From NCBI GenBank assembly GCA_964036045.1, contig OZ038378.1, positions 6,448,001 through 6,512,000 on the forward strand: a DNA stretch of 64,000 nucleotides, in the 5' to 3' direction. Origin of the DNA: Eutreptiella sp. 'Long Island Sound 2002' (taxonomy: Eukaryota > Protista > Euglenida). The position numbers were made by a program, and so were the translations under genes. Positions 866 to 48,550 of this stretch are shown here, piece after piece; position 1 is the stretch's first letter, and each line of letters starts with the position of its first letter. The notes beneath the pieces are model-generated. The model did no database searches and was not told the DNA's origin. It saw only the letters and a program-made list of their open reading frames with translations.

Positions 866-1729
866 GACTAACTTCACTGAGTGGTCACCACCCACCACTT
901 GCCAAACGACAAAGGATGGGACACAAGAGTACCCTCAAAGAAAGGCGGTATTGCAATGGGAAGCACCACAGAAGACTATTTTAGGAGGCTCTTCTGTTTT
1001 GGACCTTTTGTGGTGACACCAAGCTTCCCGTTTGGATAGATGTTGTTGGACTTAGTCTGTGGGTCTCCCTGAAACTCATTAACGGGCAAAGTAAGCAAGC
1101 ATCAAAACAAACAGAAGCACCCATATTGCAAAGGAAATGTCTTAGCTCGAGGAAGGTCTGCGGAGCCTTTGGACAGAAGCCCGACGCGTGCAGCAAGTCA
1201 GAGTCTACTCAAACCCTCCGCCCGTGCATCTTGCAGCATCTGCAAAGACATTGTCAGAGCCTCATGACCGTCGCATGCACTGTGCACCCTCTCCCTGTCG
1301 TCAGCTTGCTGCAGGGTGCTAGCCAGCCTACATACCTACATACCCCATTTTTCACCACATTTCCGGCAAACGCAACAAACAGGGGTGCTCTGACAGTATG
1401 CAAGCAGGGGGGGGGGGGGGCGATGCCGCAATGTACGTCAGTCCGGAAATCAAGCAGTCGTTCACCCTGTGTCGAGCAGACTATCCATCTGTTGTAGTTT
1501 CCTCGGGCCAAAATTTTCGAGGAATTTTCTGAATTTCTGGAACACGCGTAAGACGCTCCTTGAGAGCCGAAGTAGCCGAAGGAGCCAACTCAATCAATTC
1601 AATTCAATTTGACCGTATAAATGTTGATTCGGCTGCAAAATCCACAGTCTCTAAATCCGAATGTTGCAACTGTTCGTTTTTTCGACACGTTTTGCATGAT
1701 AGCTTCTTGGCTCTTTTCAGCAACAGGCG
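866..1729. promoter_or_regulatory. Divergent intergenic region with candidate trans-splice acceptors
   Basis: 864 bp between two head-to-head ATGs. Pyrimidine tract plus AG (cttcttggctcttttcAG, AG at 1719-1720) lies 9 nt before the kinesin ATG; G14 tract at 1407-1420. Regulatory function is inferred from position. Confidence 0.45.
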
Positions 1730-4700
1730 ATGTCGAAGGTGGAATTCCCCAACCAACCAGTGAACATACAGGTGGTGGTTCGCTGCCGACCACCAACCGT
1801 GAAGGAGAAGTTAACGCAAGTCATGGCGGTGTCCACGAAAGCCAAGCGCGAGGTCAGCGTTAACATGAAGTGTGGCCAAAACACTATGAACAAGGTTTTC
1901 AAGTTCGATGAAGTGTATGACCAAGATGCGAGCCAGGAGCAAGTCTACCGGGGAACCATCAAGCCCATCGTTGGTGAGGTACTCACTGGATACAACTGCA
2001 CGGTTTTCGCGTACGGTCAAACAGGTACTGGCAAAACATATACCATGGAGGGAGCTTTCGACCAGGCAGCCCCCTCAGAGGGAACATCTAAACTTGGAAA
2101 ATTTGCTGGAGTAATCCCCCGTGCCATACAACAGATTTTCAACACCTTGGAGCGAAGTGGCTGCGTTTACACTGTCAAACTGTCTATACTTGAGTTATAC
2201 AACGAAGAGCTTCACGATATGCTATCTCCAGACGAAGACGTGACAAAGGACCTGGGGAAACGAGCCAAATCCAAGCTTCGCCTTTTTGACGACACCACAA
2301 GGAAAGGGATGGGCACGGGTCAGGGTGGAACTGCAATGAGCACTGCTGGTGGGGTTACGATATCGGGGCTCGAGGAAGTCCCTGTTCGGCGGCTTTCTGA
2401 GGTGCTGGAGCTGATGAAGAAAGCCACAGATCGTCGACAAATAGCGGAGACCAAGCTTAATGCCACCTCCAGTCGATCACACATGATCACGACAGTTACC
2501 TTGCACATGAAAGAAACAACAGACACTGGCGAGGACCTGTGGAAGGTGGGCAAGTTGAACCTGGTCGATCTGGCAGGTTCTGAAAACATCATGCGTTCTG
2601 GAGCTCACGGCAAGAACCAAAAGGAAGCAGGCATGATCAACCAGTCACTCCTGACCCTGGGTCGAGTGATCAACGCCCTTGTTGAAGGCCAGCCTCATGT
2701 GCCTTACCGGGAGAGCAAGCTGACCCGTCTGTTGCAGGACTCCCTCGGTGGCAAAACAAAAACTTGCATAATTGCAACAATTGCTCCCACTTCCGCGTGC
2801 ATCGAAGAAACCACTAGCACCTTGGAATATGCACACCGTGCAAAGAGTATCAAAAATCGCCCGGAAGTAAACCAGCGCATGACGAAGAAACACGTGGTAA
2901 AGGAGATCATGGAGACCAACGACGAGTTGCAACGGCTGTTGATGGCCGCCCGAGAAAAAAGCGGAATCTACCTGCCGACTGAAATATACGAGAGACAGGA
3001 GGAAGAGCGCCTGGCCTTGCAAGGACGCGTCGAGGAGCTCGAAGAGAAAGTGGATGATTATCGCAGAAGCAGTCGCCTGAAAGACAAGAAGTTGCAAATG
3101 ATGAACGATGTTCTCGCGCAACTTCAAAAACAAGTCATTGGTCTCGACGAAGGCAATAGTACACACATGAATACTTTTGAGCAAGTTCATCAGAAGTCTT
3201 GCGATAAGCTGCTGGCCACGATCGACGAAATGCGCACCAGGAACGACCAAGTGCTGGAAGAATTGCATAAGGTTTTTGAGAAGATCGGCAGCTGGGTTTG
3301 TGACGTCAACAAGCGGCAGGCCGATGACCTATCCGGAAACAATCACCGCCTCCAGGAGTTGCTTAAAACTGTTGTTGAGCATGCTGAGACTGTGAAACAG
3401 TGGAATCTGAAGGTGGTTGAGGAATGTGTCGCTGCCGGAGAGCAGCTGGGTCTGCACGTTGGCTGTTTGAAACAGGATATTCTGCGAGTGAACAACGAGT
3501 GTGTTGAGGTTGTGACAGCGGCGAAGGAAGATTTCCAGGGGTTTCTGACGCGAATCAACGGGCGACTTAAGGCAGAAGTATTCGACAGTCAGCTAGCTTC
3601 ATTCGCAACATTGGAAGACCATGCTCAAAAACTTGCGGCAGTGCACGCCCGTCGCGTGCCTATGGTCAGCTCTGCAGTCAACCAGGTTTTGCAGAACGAA
3701 TTGCGTGGTGTGGTCAAAGGAGCAGACGAGATGCATCACCGCAACTGGAATATGTTTGATGCTGCTTTCGAGAAGCTCACTGAGGCTATGGGTGCGTTTG
3801 CACTGATGCAAAAGGAAAACCGCTCTGCACGGCAGCAAGATTTGACCCAGTTGGCGACACACGTTGACGAGGCTTCAAGCAGTGTTTCCAGCACGCTGCA
3901 GAAGGAGCTGGATTCCCTGAACACTGATGTCATGGACAAGACTCAGCAACTTTGCACCGACAGCCGATCCGCCAGGATAGAGTTGGACAACACCGTTGAC
4001 TCTATTTCGGGCAGTCTGGTCGACTACACGCGGCACGTTGACCACACTTGCGCGAAAAGTTTGGGCTTCCCGAAGGCTGTGGACTGCATAACCCAGGATT
4101 TTGCGGCTTGCGTGGAAAACCAAGAGGCACAGTTGCAGTCCACAGTTTTGTACAACAACCAAGCAATCGCTGGTACCCTGGAAAGCCTGGTGAAGACCAA
4201 GGAGGGTGAGATTCGAGCTCTCCAACAGCAAAATGTTGTTCTGCAGCAACGAGGAGCTGACTTCTGTGCTCGTCTTCCGTCGCAAATTGAGGGATTGGAG
4301 GCAACGCAACGTGTCAAGGGCCACTGCGAATCGTGTAGAAGTCTGCTGCCTTCTCACAAAACAAATTTGCAGGAAGTTACCAACGAATGCCACAAGAGAG
4401 TCTCCCAACATGCCAATCTGGTGAAGCAGTTCGTCGCCAACCATCAGACTGCCACACAGGAGGCTGCTGAAATTGAGGACGAGGAATGGGACAAGGAGAA
4501 CACCACCCCGTTGTCGTCTCCGGATAGTCGGTCGTGTAAGCCAGCAACGCCCCTGACGGACCCTCAGGGCCGGAAGCACATGAGAACTCCGCTGCAGGAG
4601 CTAGTGAATCGCGAATGCTTTGCAAAGTTGGGGTCGCCCAACAGTGGGAAACTCCCACCAACACCCGGCGGTAGTAAGATGGTCTCTCCAAACAACAAAA

Positions 4701-6548: not shown

Positions 6549-6574
6549 CGAAAAAAAATAGACACTCAGGAAGT
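6549..6574 (-). other. Euglenid spliced-leader exon sequence (SL relic), not an SL RNA gene
   Basis: Minus strand reads ACTTCCTGAGTGTCTATTTTTTTTCG; the Euglena gracilis SL as I recall it is ACTTTCTGAGTGTCTATTTTTTTTCG (25/26). Followed by ATTGGC, not the GT donor an SL RNA gene would have. Confidence 0.85.
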
Positions 6575-42921: not shown

Positions 42922-45185
42922 GACTCCTTCCTCGTCTGGGCTCCTGCTCCGACGAGAATTGGAGGTCTGGAGCGTGCGACTGGACGCAGTTTGGGTAGCC
43001 CTCCTCACATGTGCTAGCGCTCTTTTGCCCTCTTTTTCGGTTTGGGCATAGCAGTCAGTGCTGACAGAAAGTTTCTGATAAATAATCGAGTGGCTCAACG
43101 ATCCATTTTTTACCGATTCTTGGTTGTGGTGAAGTGACGACTTATGCTGTCGTTGGTCGTAAGTTTCCCTTTTCGCCCGCTTGAATTCATCTCTTACAAG
43201 GGCACCTCAACCGTCCCGAAGTTTTCCTGGTGCAACTTTCACGCGGACTCGTTTATGAAAAAGTGTACACACCAATCGGGCACTGCACCCGAAGCACAAA
43301 CGAGCCTTTTCATTTGCATGGGGGGAATCTCTAGGCCAAACGAGGAGTTTAATTCTTCCACATTTCCATGAAGTGGCAAACTTGGCGTTCCGAGGTTTTG
43401 CTTGAGATAATTGCGACTAGACCGATGTGCCGTGCGAAAGACGTTGTATGACGTGATTGCCCTCTCCTTTCTCGTTGTTTGATTCTTGATCATCTTTTCT
43501 CCAAGCTTCTCGGGTTCCTTTTAGTGTCGTCACCGTAAACAATGTAGAGGATGGTAAACAAGAGGCCCGTGGAAGGAGTGGATGTCGACGACGGCAACAT
43601 TCAACCGGATCTCCCATTATGGCAGATCATTTCACAAGGGACCTCACCTAGCACCACTCGCACACCGTTTCAAAGAAAACGAAAGCGTGTTCTTCGAGTT
43701 CCTCACCGCAAGCTTCAAAGGAAGGCCGGGCATGGGAAAAGTTTAGCAGGTTGGTTTGTACTTTGTTGAATGTGGGTGTCGTGCACAAATGCGACTCTGT
43801 GGGTCGCGTCGGACACATGCAAGAGAAATCTCTCGCGAAAAGTTGCGTGGCCATGCGACACCGAACCTAAGAGACGAATGGCCGTGTACAACGGCCACTA
43901 TTTGTAGGAATGTGTCCAAGTTTCTACGTGTGCCTCAACCTTTGAATCATTGATGCAACCCTGCGCACTTCGACTTGGGGGGAGGGAGTTCAAGAGGCAC
44001 CCAACATATTTATTTCGTGCATTGACATGTAGAATGTGCACGGTGAAGCGGAGTCTTGTGGTTGATGTGTGCGCATTTTTGTAAATTCGTGAGCCCCACC
44101 ACCGCACCCGCTACTCAAGATCCGAAGCTCGATAACGCAAGAATTGGGATGGATGTTGATGAAGAAGATACCATTGCAAACCACGACCAGGTGATTGGGT
44201 CCTGAATCACTTTGCCAAACGTTGTCTCTACTCGAGAACTTCCAATCCTCTTGGCAATCGAAACCTCCGGTTTTAGTGTCTTGCACAGTATTTCAAGCAA
44301 AGAAACCTCGTTCGAATTTTTGGCACCAAGATGTGTAAGTTCGATGAGCCACGTCGCACGAAACCAAGAGCACCATGGGTCTGCGTCAAATGACAAGCAT
44401 TTGAACCCATGGCGCTCTATGCACCATCTCGCATGGTGAATTCATTGTTTGTAAAAGGTTGAAGCATCTTCTTGCCCCATGCATGTTGTCAAGCCTTACC
44501 AAATATGCTAGTTAACGACAAAGTTTGTTGTGCACATGTTGGCTTCTTAACGCATACCACTACGACGAAATCCCGTGGCTACCAACACGCAAAATCAACC
44601 ACGGTGAGCTACATGGGACCGGGTTAATGTCGTTCGTCTCCATCCTACGCAATTGCCTACTGCCCCTTCACGGGATGCAAGTCAAGGTAGGTGGGGAACA
44701 GGAAGGTGGTATTTGCCATATTTTTGTCGAGCGTCGTTTGATCACATGTGTTTTCGGACGTGATTGAGTGCGAGCAAGCAACCCGATGAACAACTGGAGA
44801 TCGCAACCCTTCTAGTCGCGGGCCGCGTGAATGGGGAGTTTGCTAAAATTTTGGCGGATGGAATGGGAAATGCCGACGTAGCGTTGATTTTTCACCCTTT
44901 GGTGTTTTTTATCGTTTCGTTTCTTTTGGCAAGAAGTGTCTCTTTCAAGGAATGTGGCGCTAACTCGGATGGCATTTGTGGGTGACCAACCTTGAGCTTT
45001 GTCTAAGGGCGCGAGGTAGAGGGCCATGGTTGGAAGCATGCCTCGATTGTTCGGGCTTGCCGCCCTTGGATTCTCCGGTGGCAATGTAGATTGTCTCTGT
45101 CACCCGGACGAACAACCTCTTTCCCCAATGTATCTTGTGTCTCGTTCTACATGTGCAGCTTGGCAACGGTCACCAAGGGTTCAAG

Positions 45186-48100
45186 ATGGAAGGAGCAAAG
45201 GGAAAGCGCAAGGCCGATGGAGAGGAGGAGAAGGAAGAGGAGGAGGAAGAGGAGGAGGACGAGGACGAGGACGAGGACGAGGAGGAGGAGGATGACGAGG
45301 AGGGACATGATGAGAAGTGGGGGAGCTACAACGTAGGTTCTGTCGATGATGATCACGACGGCGGTGACGACGACGACGACGACGACGACGAAGAGGAAGA
45401 GGATGATTTTGCGGAAGAAGGTGATGATGAGGAGTCCGGTGAAGAACTTGCACCAAAGTCCGTAACTGTCGTAGATTTTTTCGTTGGCGAGCCGGTCCCC
45501 TTGGAAGCTGGCAATCTGCCAACCCATTTTGCCATGGACCTTTCTTCGTTGCCCACCACCGATTGCTATGGCAAGCCTCAACAAGCCGCATTCAAGAAGC
45601 AAAGCATACTTCGCACGTTGAATGCTTTCGTCAATACCAACGGGGGCATGCTACTATTTGGGGTTGACGATGCAGGCATTGCCCGAGGGTTGCAATTGGA
45701 TACCTCATATAAGGTGGACCCATCATGGTTGGTTTGAGGTGGTTAGGGATTTTCAATTAGTAGAGCAGAACTAGCTTGGTCACAAAGTTTCTTGTGCAGG
45801 CAACTTAAAGTGTTGGTTCATTTTTAAGAACATTGGGTTCTAGAAGCTAGGTTGGCAAGTATTCCGGATTCTGCAATAAGCAAAGACAATAGTCGTAAAT
45901 CCAGCCTAGAATATTCTTACACAAATACTCCTAATGCCGCAGCAGCACTGAATGTGAGACTTTCTCCACCTCAACTTGGCCCTACTTCAAAATCACGCCA
46001 TCCATGTGTCTCCCTCACTCCCTTCTCCCTCCCTCCCCGCCACTTTGCATTTCCGTTGTTCATTCAAGAGCACGACAAATGGCCGCTCCAGTGCTTGATA
46101 GGACAAATCATGCGAACAAGGCAACATGATCTGCAATCACAATCTATGAGCATGAACCATATTTCCCTGCCCGGGGACACCCATCTCATTGGCCAATGCA
46201 ATGAGTTCGGAAAAGGCTTGTGATATTTTGTAGGACAGTAGACAACGCTTGGTCGTGCGCCTCAAGAGTATTTCTAGAGGGCTTGGAATTGTTTAAGACA
46301 ATGAAGCCGTGTGATGACAACGCTTGAATTTGATATAGCCTTCTTCCTGATCTGACATCAAAGTTTTACAAGGCAACATTTGCAAAGCGTTGGGTGAGGA
46401 ATGTGGCCCTTATTGTATCATCGCCGGAGGAGATGGACTGGGGAGATGGGTGGATGGGGGAGAAGAGTGACGAGTGGAGATGAGAAACCATGAGATATCA
46501 AAGCCAACCAACCAGGAAAATCAGAGCTGCGTAGTCTTTTCAGATCTGTGCTGAGACATCCAACAGCGCACTTGGTTGAATTCCGAAAAAAGTGAACATT
46601 TTGGTGGGGACTCCTATATGGCGGTTTGAGGAGTTTTTAGTCGTGCCAAGCACACCACAGGTGGTCGGCCAAATTGTAGCCAATACCTGCCACGACGATT
46701 GCCGCAGTCAGCGAAATCGCTGGATGCTGGTTGTGGCAGCTGGTGCAAGCTATTTATCCGCACCGAGAAAATAATGGAATGTTCCCTTCATGTGGTGTTT
46801 GCCTTTCTTTGTGAACCCTTGCCGTGCACCTCTTTGCAGCGAATATTGCGTCGAGATGTTTGCAATATCTTCGCTTCATTTCATCCCCCTGTGGCGCAAG
46901 AAGCATTCGAGGTCCATTTTTGGCCATTGCACGACCGGCAGACGAAGGATGCGACTGGATCGGTGGTGTTTGCGGTGCTCGTAATGCCCACGGGACTGGT
47001 GCACAATTATTTGTGGAGGATTTTCGTGCGCGAAGGTCCGCTCACCTCTGCCGCTCCTCACTGCGCCTGCCTCCCACTTTTCTGCCCTCCTTTGACCACT
47101 GCCGCCTATTGCTTTTCCTCCTAAAATGATGATTCCCGTATGCTGTGCGCCTGTACACGAATAGTTGCCATCAACGTAAACACGTGTAAAAACGAGTGAA
47201 AGATTCAAGACGTGTTACAATGCTTTCTACAACCCCCAAGTGATGGCACTTCAACCCAGACCATTCGGCACAAGGGTTCAACCCCATTTGAGTTGCATTC
47301 GGCACACTGTTGGTTGGAGAGGCACCTCTATACGGGAGGCTAAAAGTGGAAGAGAATTTTTTGCAGTCACATTCAGGCCTCCAATTGTTGCAACGGCTAC
47401 TTCCCCCTGGGGGGTGGTGTACCCAATTTTCATTTGGCACAACGTTTTGCAAGCAACATGACATGGCCAACGCTGGCGAGGATTTGAGATGCGGATGGTG
47501 TTGTCGGGATTCACCAGCAGGTGGCATCCGGTAGGACAATTGGGAGCTTAATCAAGATGTCGGGAAGGGAGTTTGCATTTCTCCCAATTGTTTGCTCTGC
47601 GTGCCACATCATTCTTAGGCACAGAGAACAAAGCCGTCGAGTTGCCAGAGGAGTTGTTGCAGGCCAAGCAGTCATTGCTTGATGCTAAGAAGCCGGCAAA
47701 GAAAATCTCATCACGGGGTTTCAGCAGCTTGAGGCAGATGAAAGCAGTTCTCAGGCGGAAAGGTTCAGCCTCAACGGGGCCTGCCAAGAAGCAAGGCAAG
47801 GGCAAAGGAGGCAAAGGTGGTAAGGGGAAAAAGGAAGCAGACGACGAGAGAGGGAAAAAAGCAGGCTGGAAAGGTGCAAAGCAGGAGCATGAGGGCTGGG
47901 GCGTCAATGATTGGGAAAACGAAAAGTGGCAAGATGCAAATGAAGCAAACGTAGGTTGGAGTGGCAGCGGTGGAAAGGCAGCTTGGAAAGGAAGTGAAGC
48001 ATGGCAGCGAAGCTGGAGTGCAGATGACTGGGACGATGGGGAATGGAAAAGTGGCAAAGGAAGAAGTGAAGACTGGAGTGGAGCTGGTTTGCGAAAGGAA

Positions 48101-48550
48101 GCATCGCAAGGATGGAGTGAAGGCTGGGGCAGGGCTGATGGAGGGAAAGAGGCGTGGCATGGTGGAAAAGAATGGAATCAAGACTGGAATGCGGGGTCCT
48201 GGGATACTGGGGAATGGGGTTTGCGAAAGAAAGCATCACAGGGGTGGAGTGAAGGCTGGGGCAGGGCTGATGGAGGGAAGGAGGCGTGGCATGGTGGAAA
48301 AGAATGGAATCAAGACTGGACTGCGGGGTCCTGGGATACAGGGGAATGGAGAAGTGGCAAAAGAAGAAATGAAGACTGGAGTGCGGATGCAATGGAATCG
48401 GGGAGGTGGAAGAGTGGAGGGCTTGCCGGTAGAGATGGAGATGATTGGGATAAAAAGGCGGCGAAATTGAGCAAGAAACGGAAAGCAGGCAATGAGCAGA
48501 AGCAAGGGGGCAATCTCCTCCTATCCAAATTCCTCAAGCCTGGCCGATGA
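45186..48550 (+). CDS. 3-exon, ~551-aa protein: acidic tract + Schlafen/AlbA_2 domain + Lys/Gly linker + Trp/Gly-rich tail
   Basis: Exons 45186-45713, 46840-47035, 47619-48550; GT-AG, phases 0 and 1 match, 1656 nt. ILRTLNAFVNTNGGMLLFGVDDAGIARG...YK|RILRRDVCNIFASFHPPV...VVFAVLV...IFVREG|TENKAVELPEEL spans the AlbA_2 fold. An acceptor near 45157 allows an upstream exon or trans-splicing. Confidence 0.85.
48086..48349 (+). repeat. 132-bp (44-codon) in-frame tandem duplication in the Trp-rich tail
   Basis: GLRK(E/K)ASQGWSEGWGRADGGKEAWHGGKEWNQDW(N/T)AGSWDTGEW twice; starts at 48086 and 48218. Confidence 0.95.

Follow-up and report, generated by a model that had tools for sequence, protein, structure and literature searches.

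A single-lobed Schlafen/AlbA_2 protein with a tryptophan-rich tail as a candidate Argonaute partner in the euglenid Eutreptiella

We have analyzed a 64,000-nucleotide stretch of the genome of Eutreptiella sp. 'Long Island Sound 2002' (contig OZ038378.1, positions 6,448,001 to 6,512,000 of the forward strand; hereafter the window), and we describe in it a three-exon gene that encodes an acidic N-terminal tract, one Schlafen/AlbA_2 domain and a C-terminal tail rich in Trp. The explanation that we favor overall, and hold only tentatively, is that the product joins a nuclease-dead AlbA_2 lobe to a Trp tail that docks onto an Argonaute or Piwi protein. Both the docking function and Argonaute as the partner are what we infer, and we regard a role as a silencing adaptor as a reasonable, testable hypothesis, lying between unlikely and tentatively acceptable.

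According to this explanation, a real, spliced, single-copy gene, so far confined to Euglena-type euglenids, encodes one AlbA_2 lobe. The lobe retains the Schlafen fold together with its box and its Gly/hydrophobic core but has lost the metal-binding motif. A conserved helix and a basic linker would then lead to a disordered tail of ~250 residues, with Trp placed regularly among Gly, Ser, Asp, Glu and Lys. The tail would be a multivalent Trp-docking platform whose Trp side chains enter hydrophobic pockets of a partner, most likely the PIWI domain of one of the Argonaute/Piwi proteins of the genome. The protein would tether a Schlafen module to Argonaute in trans, as prokaryotic Schlafen-Argonaute (SLFN-pAgo) proteins do by fusion.

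Gene structure and euglenid relatives

The ATG at 45186 is the first in-frame start on the plus strand, with no earlier in-frame ATG before the upstream stop (Table 1). Exon 1 ends at the donor AAG/GT, exon 2 lies between the acceptor TTGCAG and the donor GAAG/GT, and exon 3 follows the acceptor TCTTAG. The coding lengths of 528, 196 and 929 nt make up one frame of 1653 nt, or 551 amino acids when joined, and intron 2 interrupts a Gly codon (G + GC).

An exhaustive HMMER search of 1.84 billion representatives, for which the C-terminal 86 residues of exon 1 were the query, yielded three close relatives, P0001, P0003 and P0004. The first consists of exon 1 plus seven read-through codons into intron 1 and is an open reading frame (ORF) called on genomic DNA, which makes it uninformative on splicing. 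P0003 is a 109-residue fragment with 55% identity, labeled Euglena gracilis EG_transcript_60138 in EukProt, and P0004 is a 294-residue protein from short metatranscriptome and SRA contigs. P0012, a 319-residue member of the P0004 cluster, is encoded by a contig that starts with the spliced leader (SL) AGTGTCTATTTTTTTTCG, followed 25 nt later by an ATG and a 319-codon ORF, and this transcript is therefore a mature euglenid mRNA with a complete 5' end.

All three exons are collinear with the single P0004/P0012 ORF, with zero indels at both junctions. Exon 1 residues 106-176 align to P0004 residues 16-86 (39% identity, E 2e-17), exon 2 residues 3-64 to residues 89-150 (60% identity, E 2e-26) and exon 3 residues 1-86 to residues 153-218 (E 3e-4). 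The split Gly corresponds to P0004 G152, and together with the TE.(K/E)AVELPEEL after it matches P0004 152-163 free of gaps. Because of this gap-free collinear alignment to P0004, and to P0003, which spans the exon 1/2 junction uninterrupted, the comparative support for both splice junctions being real is strong. BLASTP of exon 2 against L003, an AlbA_2 paralogue in the same genome, gave no alignment, so the exon 1/2 junction rests on P0003 and P0004 and not on paralogues. The phase-consistent three-exon ORF proposed in an initial annotation, made from the DNA letters, is thus retained, with GT-AG introns and collinearity with a spliced, SL-capped mRNA of a related euglenid.

Given that just three relatives were found among the 1.84 billion representatives, the family appears to be restricted to Euglena-type euglenids. 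P0004 as the query of a word search returned only itself, and a metagenome scan with the patterns RDV[AC]NIFA and [FM]PTGLVHN gave 115 pattern matches and no relatives. P0003 has no near-identical locus in the Eutreptiella genome, where the window gene matches it best, with 52-60% identity; either this genome belongs to a euglenid species other than that of P0003, or the assembly lacks a paralogue. An SL exon of the Euglena type followed by GT occurs in 1714 copies in the 2.28-Gb genome, in agreement with the euglenid origin given in the initial annotation. Also in the window, at 6549-6566 on the minus strand, 18 nt are identical to the 3' part of the SL exon, a match for which the chance expectation is none.

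The acidic tract that had been noted is borne out, as exon 1 has 64 Asp or Glu among its 176 residues. The tract is not present in the orthologue P0012, whose N-terminus is basic, with a KRKRR-type patch. At window positions 45225-45391 its coding DNA consists of ACG triplet repeats and repeats of the GAG/GAC hexamer type (Tandem Repeats Finder [TRF] periods 6, 12, 18 and 3), and the tract probably arose via microsatellite expansion within the coding region. Both the window protein and the orthologue carry basic patches at both ends, suggesting a nuclear location of the product.

That the locus is non-functional, as a copy in decay or as a frame that low-complexity, purine-rich DNA has left open by chance, we consider very improbable. 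In line with such a locus, its sole database record, P0001, is the genomic ORF call running seven codons into intron 1, and repeat-like DNA underlies the acidic tract and parts of the tail. However, the three exons share one open, phase-consistent frame with GT-AG boundaries, exon 2 keeps its 60% identity to the orthologue, the relatives are expressed as SL-capped mRNA, and the synonymous excess in the duplicated unit of the tail, described below, indicates selection in this frame.

The AlbA_2 lobe and its missing nuclease motif

For Pfam, profiles and structure we used the separate exons or, in place of the whole protein, the natural orthologue P0004/P0012. Exon 1 residues 137-170 match positions 16-49 of the Pfam profile SLFN_AlbA_2 (PF04326) with 30.5 bits (E 6e-7), above the gathering cut-off of 25.3 bits. 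P0003 reaches profile position 78 across the exon 1/2 junction with 28.2 bits, P0004 stays below the cut-off with 20.1 bits, and exon 2 on its own has no Pfam match. Compared with PDB sequences, a profile (A3) built from the family together with its paralogues matched SLFN5 (E 1.8e-10) and also SLFN14, 12, 11 and 13/8, and its exon-2-encoded stretch aligned to the C-lobe of SLFN5.

The AlphaFold2 model of P0004 has a predicted local distance difference test (pLDDT) score of 80-92 over residues 11-135, followed by a helix at 162-187. Its best Foldseek matches were the AlbA_2 domain of SAMD9 and the Schlafen domains of SLFN13/11/12/5/14 (7ksp, 5yd0, 7zep, 7lrd, 9o0d), with E values of 1e-4 to 1e-3 and a probability of 1.00. 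The two-layer alpha+beta fold of the Schlafen C-lobe was found in this model, which is that of the orthologue and not of the joined window protein. The ESM Atlas clusters nearest to P0012 are all AlbA_2, and in exon 1 the Schlafen box NAFVN, followed by GGMLLFGVDD, aligned to SAFANTEGGYVFFGV of SLFN5. The Pfam score above the cut-off, the SLFN5 profile match, the orthologue model with its Foldseek matches and the ESM Atlas all agree with the AlbA_2 fold that the initial annotation had recognized.

The lobe shares with the known AlbA_2 domains (PF04326), namely the C-lobe of mammalian SLFN5/11/12/13/14 and the tRNase/DNA-binding effector domain of SAMD9, the alpha+beta fold, the Schlafen-box-like NAFVN and GGxLLFGVDD, whereas the window protein is single-lobed and has no N-lobe, SWADL linker, helicase, SAM, SIR2 or P-loop. 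Mammalian-type Schlafens are bilobed with a SWADL linker and may have a C-terminal helicase, but the exons gave one AlbA_2 match and no other Pfam family, and the orthologue has a total length of just 319 residues. SAMD9 and SAMD9L combine SAM, AlbA_2, SIR2, a P-loop NTPase, TPR and OB, and no SAM or other such domain was found in any exon.

Active Schlafen nucleases combine the motif E(x)4(D/E)xK with a Schlafen box (SAFAN) and a Gly/hydrophobic core, and three acids hold the metal, two of which are provided by E(x)4(D/E)xK (bioRxiv 10.64898/2026.05.29.728809). Over the ~50 residues that precede the Schlafen box, neither the window protein nor P0004 nor P0003 has an E(x)4(D/E)xK, whichever of three registers is used: the one first proposed (THFA), a Schlafen-spaced one (LPTT) and one with short bacterial-type spacing, in which (K/R)P...A.K replaces E....E.K. 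The initial annotation saw the motif as seemingly replaced by EAGNLPTHFA; its absence stands, but the register is uncertain, since the two others are equally possible and none holds the motif. Pfam matches of this orthologue group begin at profile positions 16-22, whereas that of the paralogue L003 begins at position 1. Among the metal-binding acids only the Asp of GVDD is kept, probably the third acidic residue.

L003 (G000 C11:17844591-17847689, ORF 1018-1827, plus strand; ~17.845 Mb of C11) encodes a SAM domain and then an AlbA_2 domain, with 45% identity to the window gene over the Schlafen box, and it keeps ETQVSEFK. Because this paralogue in the same genome retains the motif, its loss is specific to the orthologue group of the window gene. 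With SAM ahead of AlbA_2, L003 has the domain order found at the N-terminus of SAMD9. Elsewhere in the genome lie at least 14 more AlbA_2-like matches, several of them near-identical copies on contigs C18, C10 and C1. They share the AlbA_2 domain with the window gene, but no relative of the Trp tail is present at any other locus of the genome. The second-best match of the HMMER search was P0002, an NCBI-sourced protein of 2337 residues with ~22 tandem AlbA_2 matches (Pfam E 1e-155).

With E(x)4(D/E)xK lost, the domain of the window protein most likely binds RNA or DNA without Schlafen-type cleavage, or it is a non-catalytic partner lobe of an active paralogue.

The tryptophan-rich tail and its possible partners

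The Trp-rich region of exon 3 holds 28 Trp in 194 residues (14.4%), and at an assumed Trp frequency of 1.5% the probability of at least 28 in this length is ~4e-19. Seven GW and four WG dipeptides place eight Trp beside Gly, so that the earlier counts of 28 and 8 are exact, and the region itself measures 194 residues. Gly makes up 19.6%, Ala, Glu, Asp and Ser ~9-10% each, Lys/Arg 14% and Asp/Glu 19%, while Leu, Ile, Met, Tyr, Cys, Phe, Val and Pro together account for 6 of the 194 residues (3%), with Tyr and Phe at zero.

The Trp are evenly spaced. All 27 Trp-to-Trp gaps are between 4 and 13, mostly 5 and 10 (nine of 10, two of 13), and none of 100,000 random placements matched the observed evenness, also when one duplicate copy was removed. 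Four W-x4-W-x9-W modules of the form [SD]W[DE]xx[EGK]W-x9-WS occur in the window tail and one in the tail of P0004. C-mannosylation (W-x-x-W) as a reading of the Trp was ruled out, as no Trp-to-Trp gap of 3 exists.

The 44-residue unit that had been described as recently duplicated is a tandem of two 132-bp units in frame (48086-48217 and 48218-48349). The copies have seven differences, five synonymous and two non-synonymous, with a ratio of non-synonymous to synonymous proportions (pN/pS) of ~0.10 (Fisher p 0.003), and this synonymous excess indicates that the frame is translated and constrained; the tail is under purifying selection. The in-frame duplication is therefore upheld, but 'recently' holds only in a relative sense, as a pS of ~0.19 means that the duplication is not very recent.

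The genome holds a single copy of the tail. A word search of 5.8 billion clusters with the tail ORF (325 residues; the search admits proteins of up to 569 residues) gave zero relatives, and therefore no transcript-derived full-length protein of the species is on record. ESM Atlas gave a best score of 0.81 with the tail and no lead. The tail of P0004 has 7 Trp in 53 residues (13.2%) and is shorter and Pro-rich, with one of its seven Trp adjoining Gly. In this one orthologue, the Trp density is alike and one three-Trp module aligns, while the flanking Gly are not kept. In the AlphaFold2 model, the P0004 tail has a pLDDT of ~30 and no secondary structure, and for the window tail the 3% of hydrophobic residues argue for disorder as well.

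We re-implemented the dos score from Table 1 of PMC2910046, with an extension threshold (dec) of 8.6 half-bits and a significance level of 6.99 half-bits. Exon 3 residues 48-298 scored 152.2 half-bits, compared with 90-107 for TNRC6A-C under the same matrix, 32 for the next best ORF segment in the window and 29.7 ('medium') for the P0004 tail. The 'strong' class (>150) holds only NRPE1, SPT5L and GTB1 (PMC2910046), and the Ago-hook-like composition claimed for the tail is accordingly supported, as composition, in the class of NRPE1 and SPT5L. Argonaute-binding sites comprise at least two Trp that are ~10 or more residues apart (PMC9262622), a spacing that the window tail has, and Argonaute-binding Trp are Gly-flanked 'often, but not always' (bioRxiv 10.1101/2025.10.18.683247).

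Like the GW/WG platforms (the Argonaute-binding domain of GW182/TNRC6, the C-terminal domain of plant NRPE1, plant SPT5L and fission-yeast Tas3), the tail is made of repeats, consists mainly of Trp, Gly, Ser, Asp, Asn and Ala and has hardly any Leu, Ile, Met, Tyr or Cys. It also resembles them in its multivalency, with Trp pairs ~10 residues apart, and in its dos class. As in SPT5L and GTB1, the tail is a C-terminal extension of a conserved protein. On the other hand, there is no sequence homology to these platforms, just 8 of the 28 Trp stand beside Gly, Lys and Glu are more frequent, and Argonaute binding is putative here. GW182/TNRC6 proteins combine UBA-like, Q-rich, PAM2 and RRM modules with a silencing domain; none of the modules UBA, PAM2 and RRM was found, exon 3 having no Pfam match at E up to 1.

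Piwi-domain matches occur in at least seven places in the genome, on C12, C13, C14, C22, C2 and C18, which are contigs other than that of the window gene. The Trp pockets of human AGO2 are at K660/L694 (bioRxiv 10.1101/2025.10.18.683247). In one of the Piwi exons (L026, G000 C12:44159064-44162588, ORF 1438-2061, minus strand), LRNGVGD stands in place of the usual Argonaute RDG with its catalytic Asp, and the exon ends in GFYYL; read by eye, it may belong to a slicer-inactive protein of the Piwi clade. Immediately beside another (L027, G000 C14:1479052-1482357) lies, at ~1800-3050, ~1.2 kb of dinucleotide-like repeat that is open in more than one frame, as (GR)n, (AP)n and (PL)n, and is probably an intronic microsatellite.

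Several points weigh against an Argonaute-docking tail on a nuclease-dead lobe. The dos score captures composition only and also flags Gly/Trp-biased proteins such as glycine-rich proteins and hornerin (PMC2910046), and the tail is richer in Lys and Glu than the plant platforms. The GW/WG context is not conserved in the single full-length orthologue, given its short, Pro-rich tail with only one Trp beside Gly. The single Piwi exons of the genome, in which the Trp pockets were sought, are split and bear insertions, and the loss of nuclease activity is read from the motif.

The main alternative, a tail unrelated to Argonaute, is a real possibility, if a doubtful one. It would be a lineage-specific, fast-evolving disordered region in which Trp and Lys/Arg act as stickers for self-association or condensates, or an auxiliary nucleic-acid surface for the AlbA_2 lobe. 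Between the two species the tail is very different in sequence and length and has not kept its GW context, the charged residues reach the proportions given above and the flanks are rich in Lys and Gly, no relative of the tail was found in the 5.8 billion clusters or in ESM Atlas, and composition scores do yield false positives (PMC2910046). However, the even 5/10 spacing of the Trp, the module shared with the orthologue and the low pN/pS point to constraint on the Trp positions and not on bulk composition, and Tyr and Phe, the more usual stickers, are wholly absent from the tail.

The Trp could also serve another partner with suitable pockets, since GW182 Trp motifs bind CNOT9 and PAN3 besides Argonaute. 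In this case, the tail would dock onto the CCR4-NOT subunit CNOT9/CAF40 or onto PAN3, which bind Trp motifs in the silencing domain of GW182, or onto another reader of Trp in acidic context, and the protein would recruit mRNA decay or other machinery to nucleic acid bound by AlbA_2. More than half of the Trp (15 of 28) are in acidic or Ser context (DW, EW or SW) rather than GW, as would suit such a reader, but the basic patches at both ends hint at a nuclear and not a cytoplasmic role, and we have no evidence specific to CNOT9 or PAN3, neither of which was searched for in the genome. We consider this alternative improbable, and the docking of the tail onto an Argonaute or Piwi protein remains our preferred reading.

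Table 1. Features of the Schlafen/AlbA_2 gene with Trp-rich tail (window positions)
Feature	Positions	Strand	Basis
Putative 5' untranslated region after a plausible spliced-leader acceptor	45159..45185	+	AG at 45157-45158 behind a pyrimidine-rich run; analogy with orthologue mRNA (L023)
Exon 1 (phase 0, 176 codons), with the basic patch KGKRKA, the D/E tract and the N-terminal half of AlbA_2	45186..45713	+	
Acidic D/E tract, ~residues 11-87	45216..45446	+	Partly GAG/GAC microsatellite-like DNA
AlbA_2, first part, with Schlafen-box-like NAFVN and GGMLLFGVDD	45483..45713	+	Pfam; profile against PDB sequences
Intron 1, 1126 nt, GT...AG	45714..46839	+	Junction: gap-free alignment to P0003 and P0004
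Exon 2, 196 nt, second half of AlbA_2	46840..47035	+	Identity to P0004; family profile to SLFN5 C-lobe
Intron 2, 583 nt, GT...AG	47036..47618	+	Split Gly codon; gap-free match to P0004
Exon 3 start: conserved helix (AVELPEEL...) and Lys/Gly-rich basic linker	47619..47866	+	Helix 162-187 in orthologue model
Trp-rich region, 194 residues	47867..48448	+	Composition; spacing; four W-x4-W-x9-W modules
In-frame tandem duplication, 2 x 132 bp (2 x 44 residues)	48086..48349	+	TRF score 479, 94% matches
Basic C-terminus (KKRK-type patch), stop TGA at 48548-48550	48449..48550	+	Sequence

Schlafen and Argonaute as partners

In prokaryotes, Schlafen/AlbA_2 domains occur in fusions with Argonautes or in genes next to theirs (Ryazansky et al. 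2018, PMC6299218; Kuzmenko et al. 2026 preprint, 10.64898/2026.05.29.728809), and in one SLFN-pAgo fusion the Argonaute is the sensor and the Schlafen is the tRNase effector. Since such fusions and operons are documented, the idea of a Schlafen-Argonaute partnership becomes more plausible and the pairing itself less new. The initial annotation knew of no described protein joining AlbA_2 with GW/WG repeats; none was found in the literature that we searched, but the pairing of Schlafen with Argonaute was already known from prokaryotes. What would be new is a eukaryotic version of it, in trans, via a Trp tail and with a silent Schlafen lobe.

The SLFN-pAgo proteins pair a single-lobe Schlafen/AlbA_2 with an Argonaute, a likeness that would hold here only if the tail binds Argonaute. 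Theirs is an active tRNase, covalently joined to a GHKL ATPase and the Argonaute core, whereas in the window gene the nuclease motif is lost, GHKL and Piwi domains are absent, and only a non-covalent link via the Trp tail would be available. Pfam on the exons did not find the chain of Schlafen, GHKL and PAZ/MID/PIWI that defines these proteins. Because its architecture differs from each of theirs, the window protein is not a mammalian-type Schlafen, a SAMD9, a GW182 or an SLFN-pAgo.

No Trp-platform partner of Argonaute has been described for euglenids or their relatives in the literature searched. The window gene could be the first GW-type Argonaute partner of Euglenozoa, a silent Schlafen module hooked onto a nuclear Argonaute/Piwi protein by a Trp tail, a specific form of the proposal that we think rather unlikely as it stands. 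For the silencing complexes of these transposon-laden 2-Gb genomes, the gene offers a concrete, testable candidate. Even without Argonaute, it would be a clean case of a nuclease-dead Schlafen lobe under selection, and W-x4-W-x9-W would be a defined short motif whose reader can be sought. If Argonaute is the partner, the gene links two families of defense and regulation that have so far been found physically coupled only in bacteria and archaea. It would then be the eukaryotic equivalent, acting in trans, of the Schlafen-Argonaute fusions of prokaryotes, and would suggest that the partnership is either ancient or one that has arisen repeatedly.

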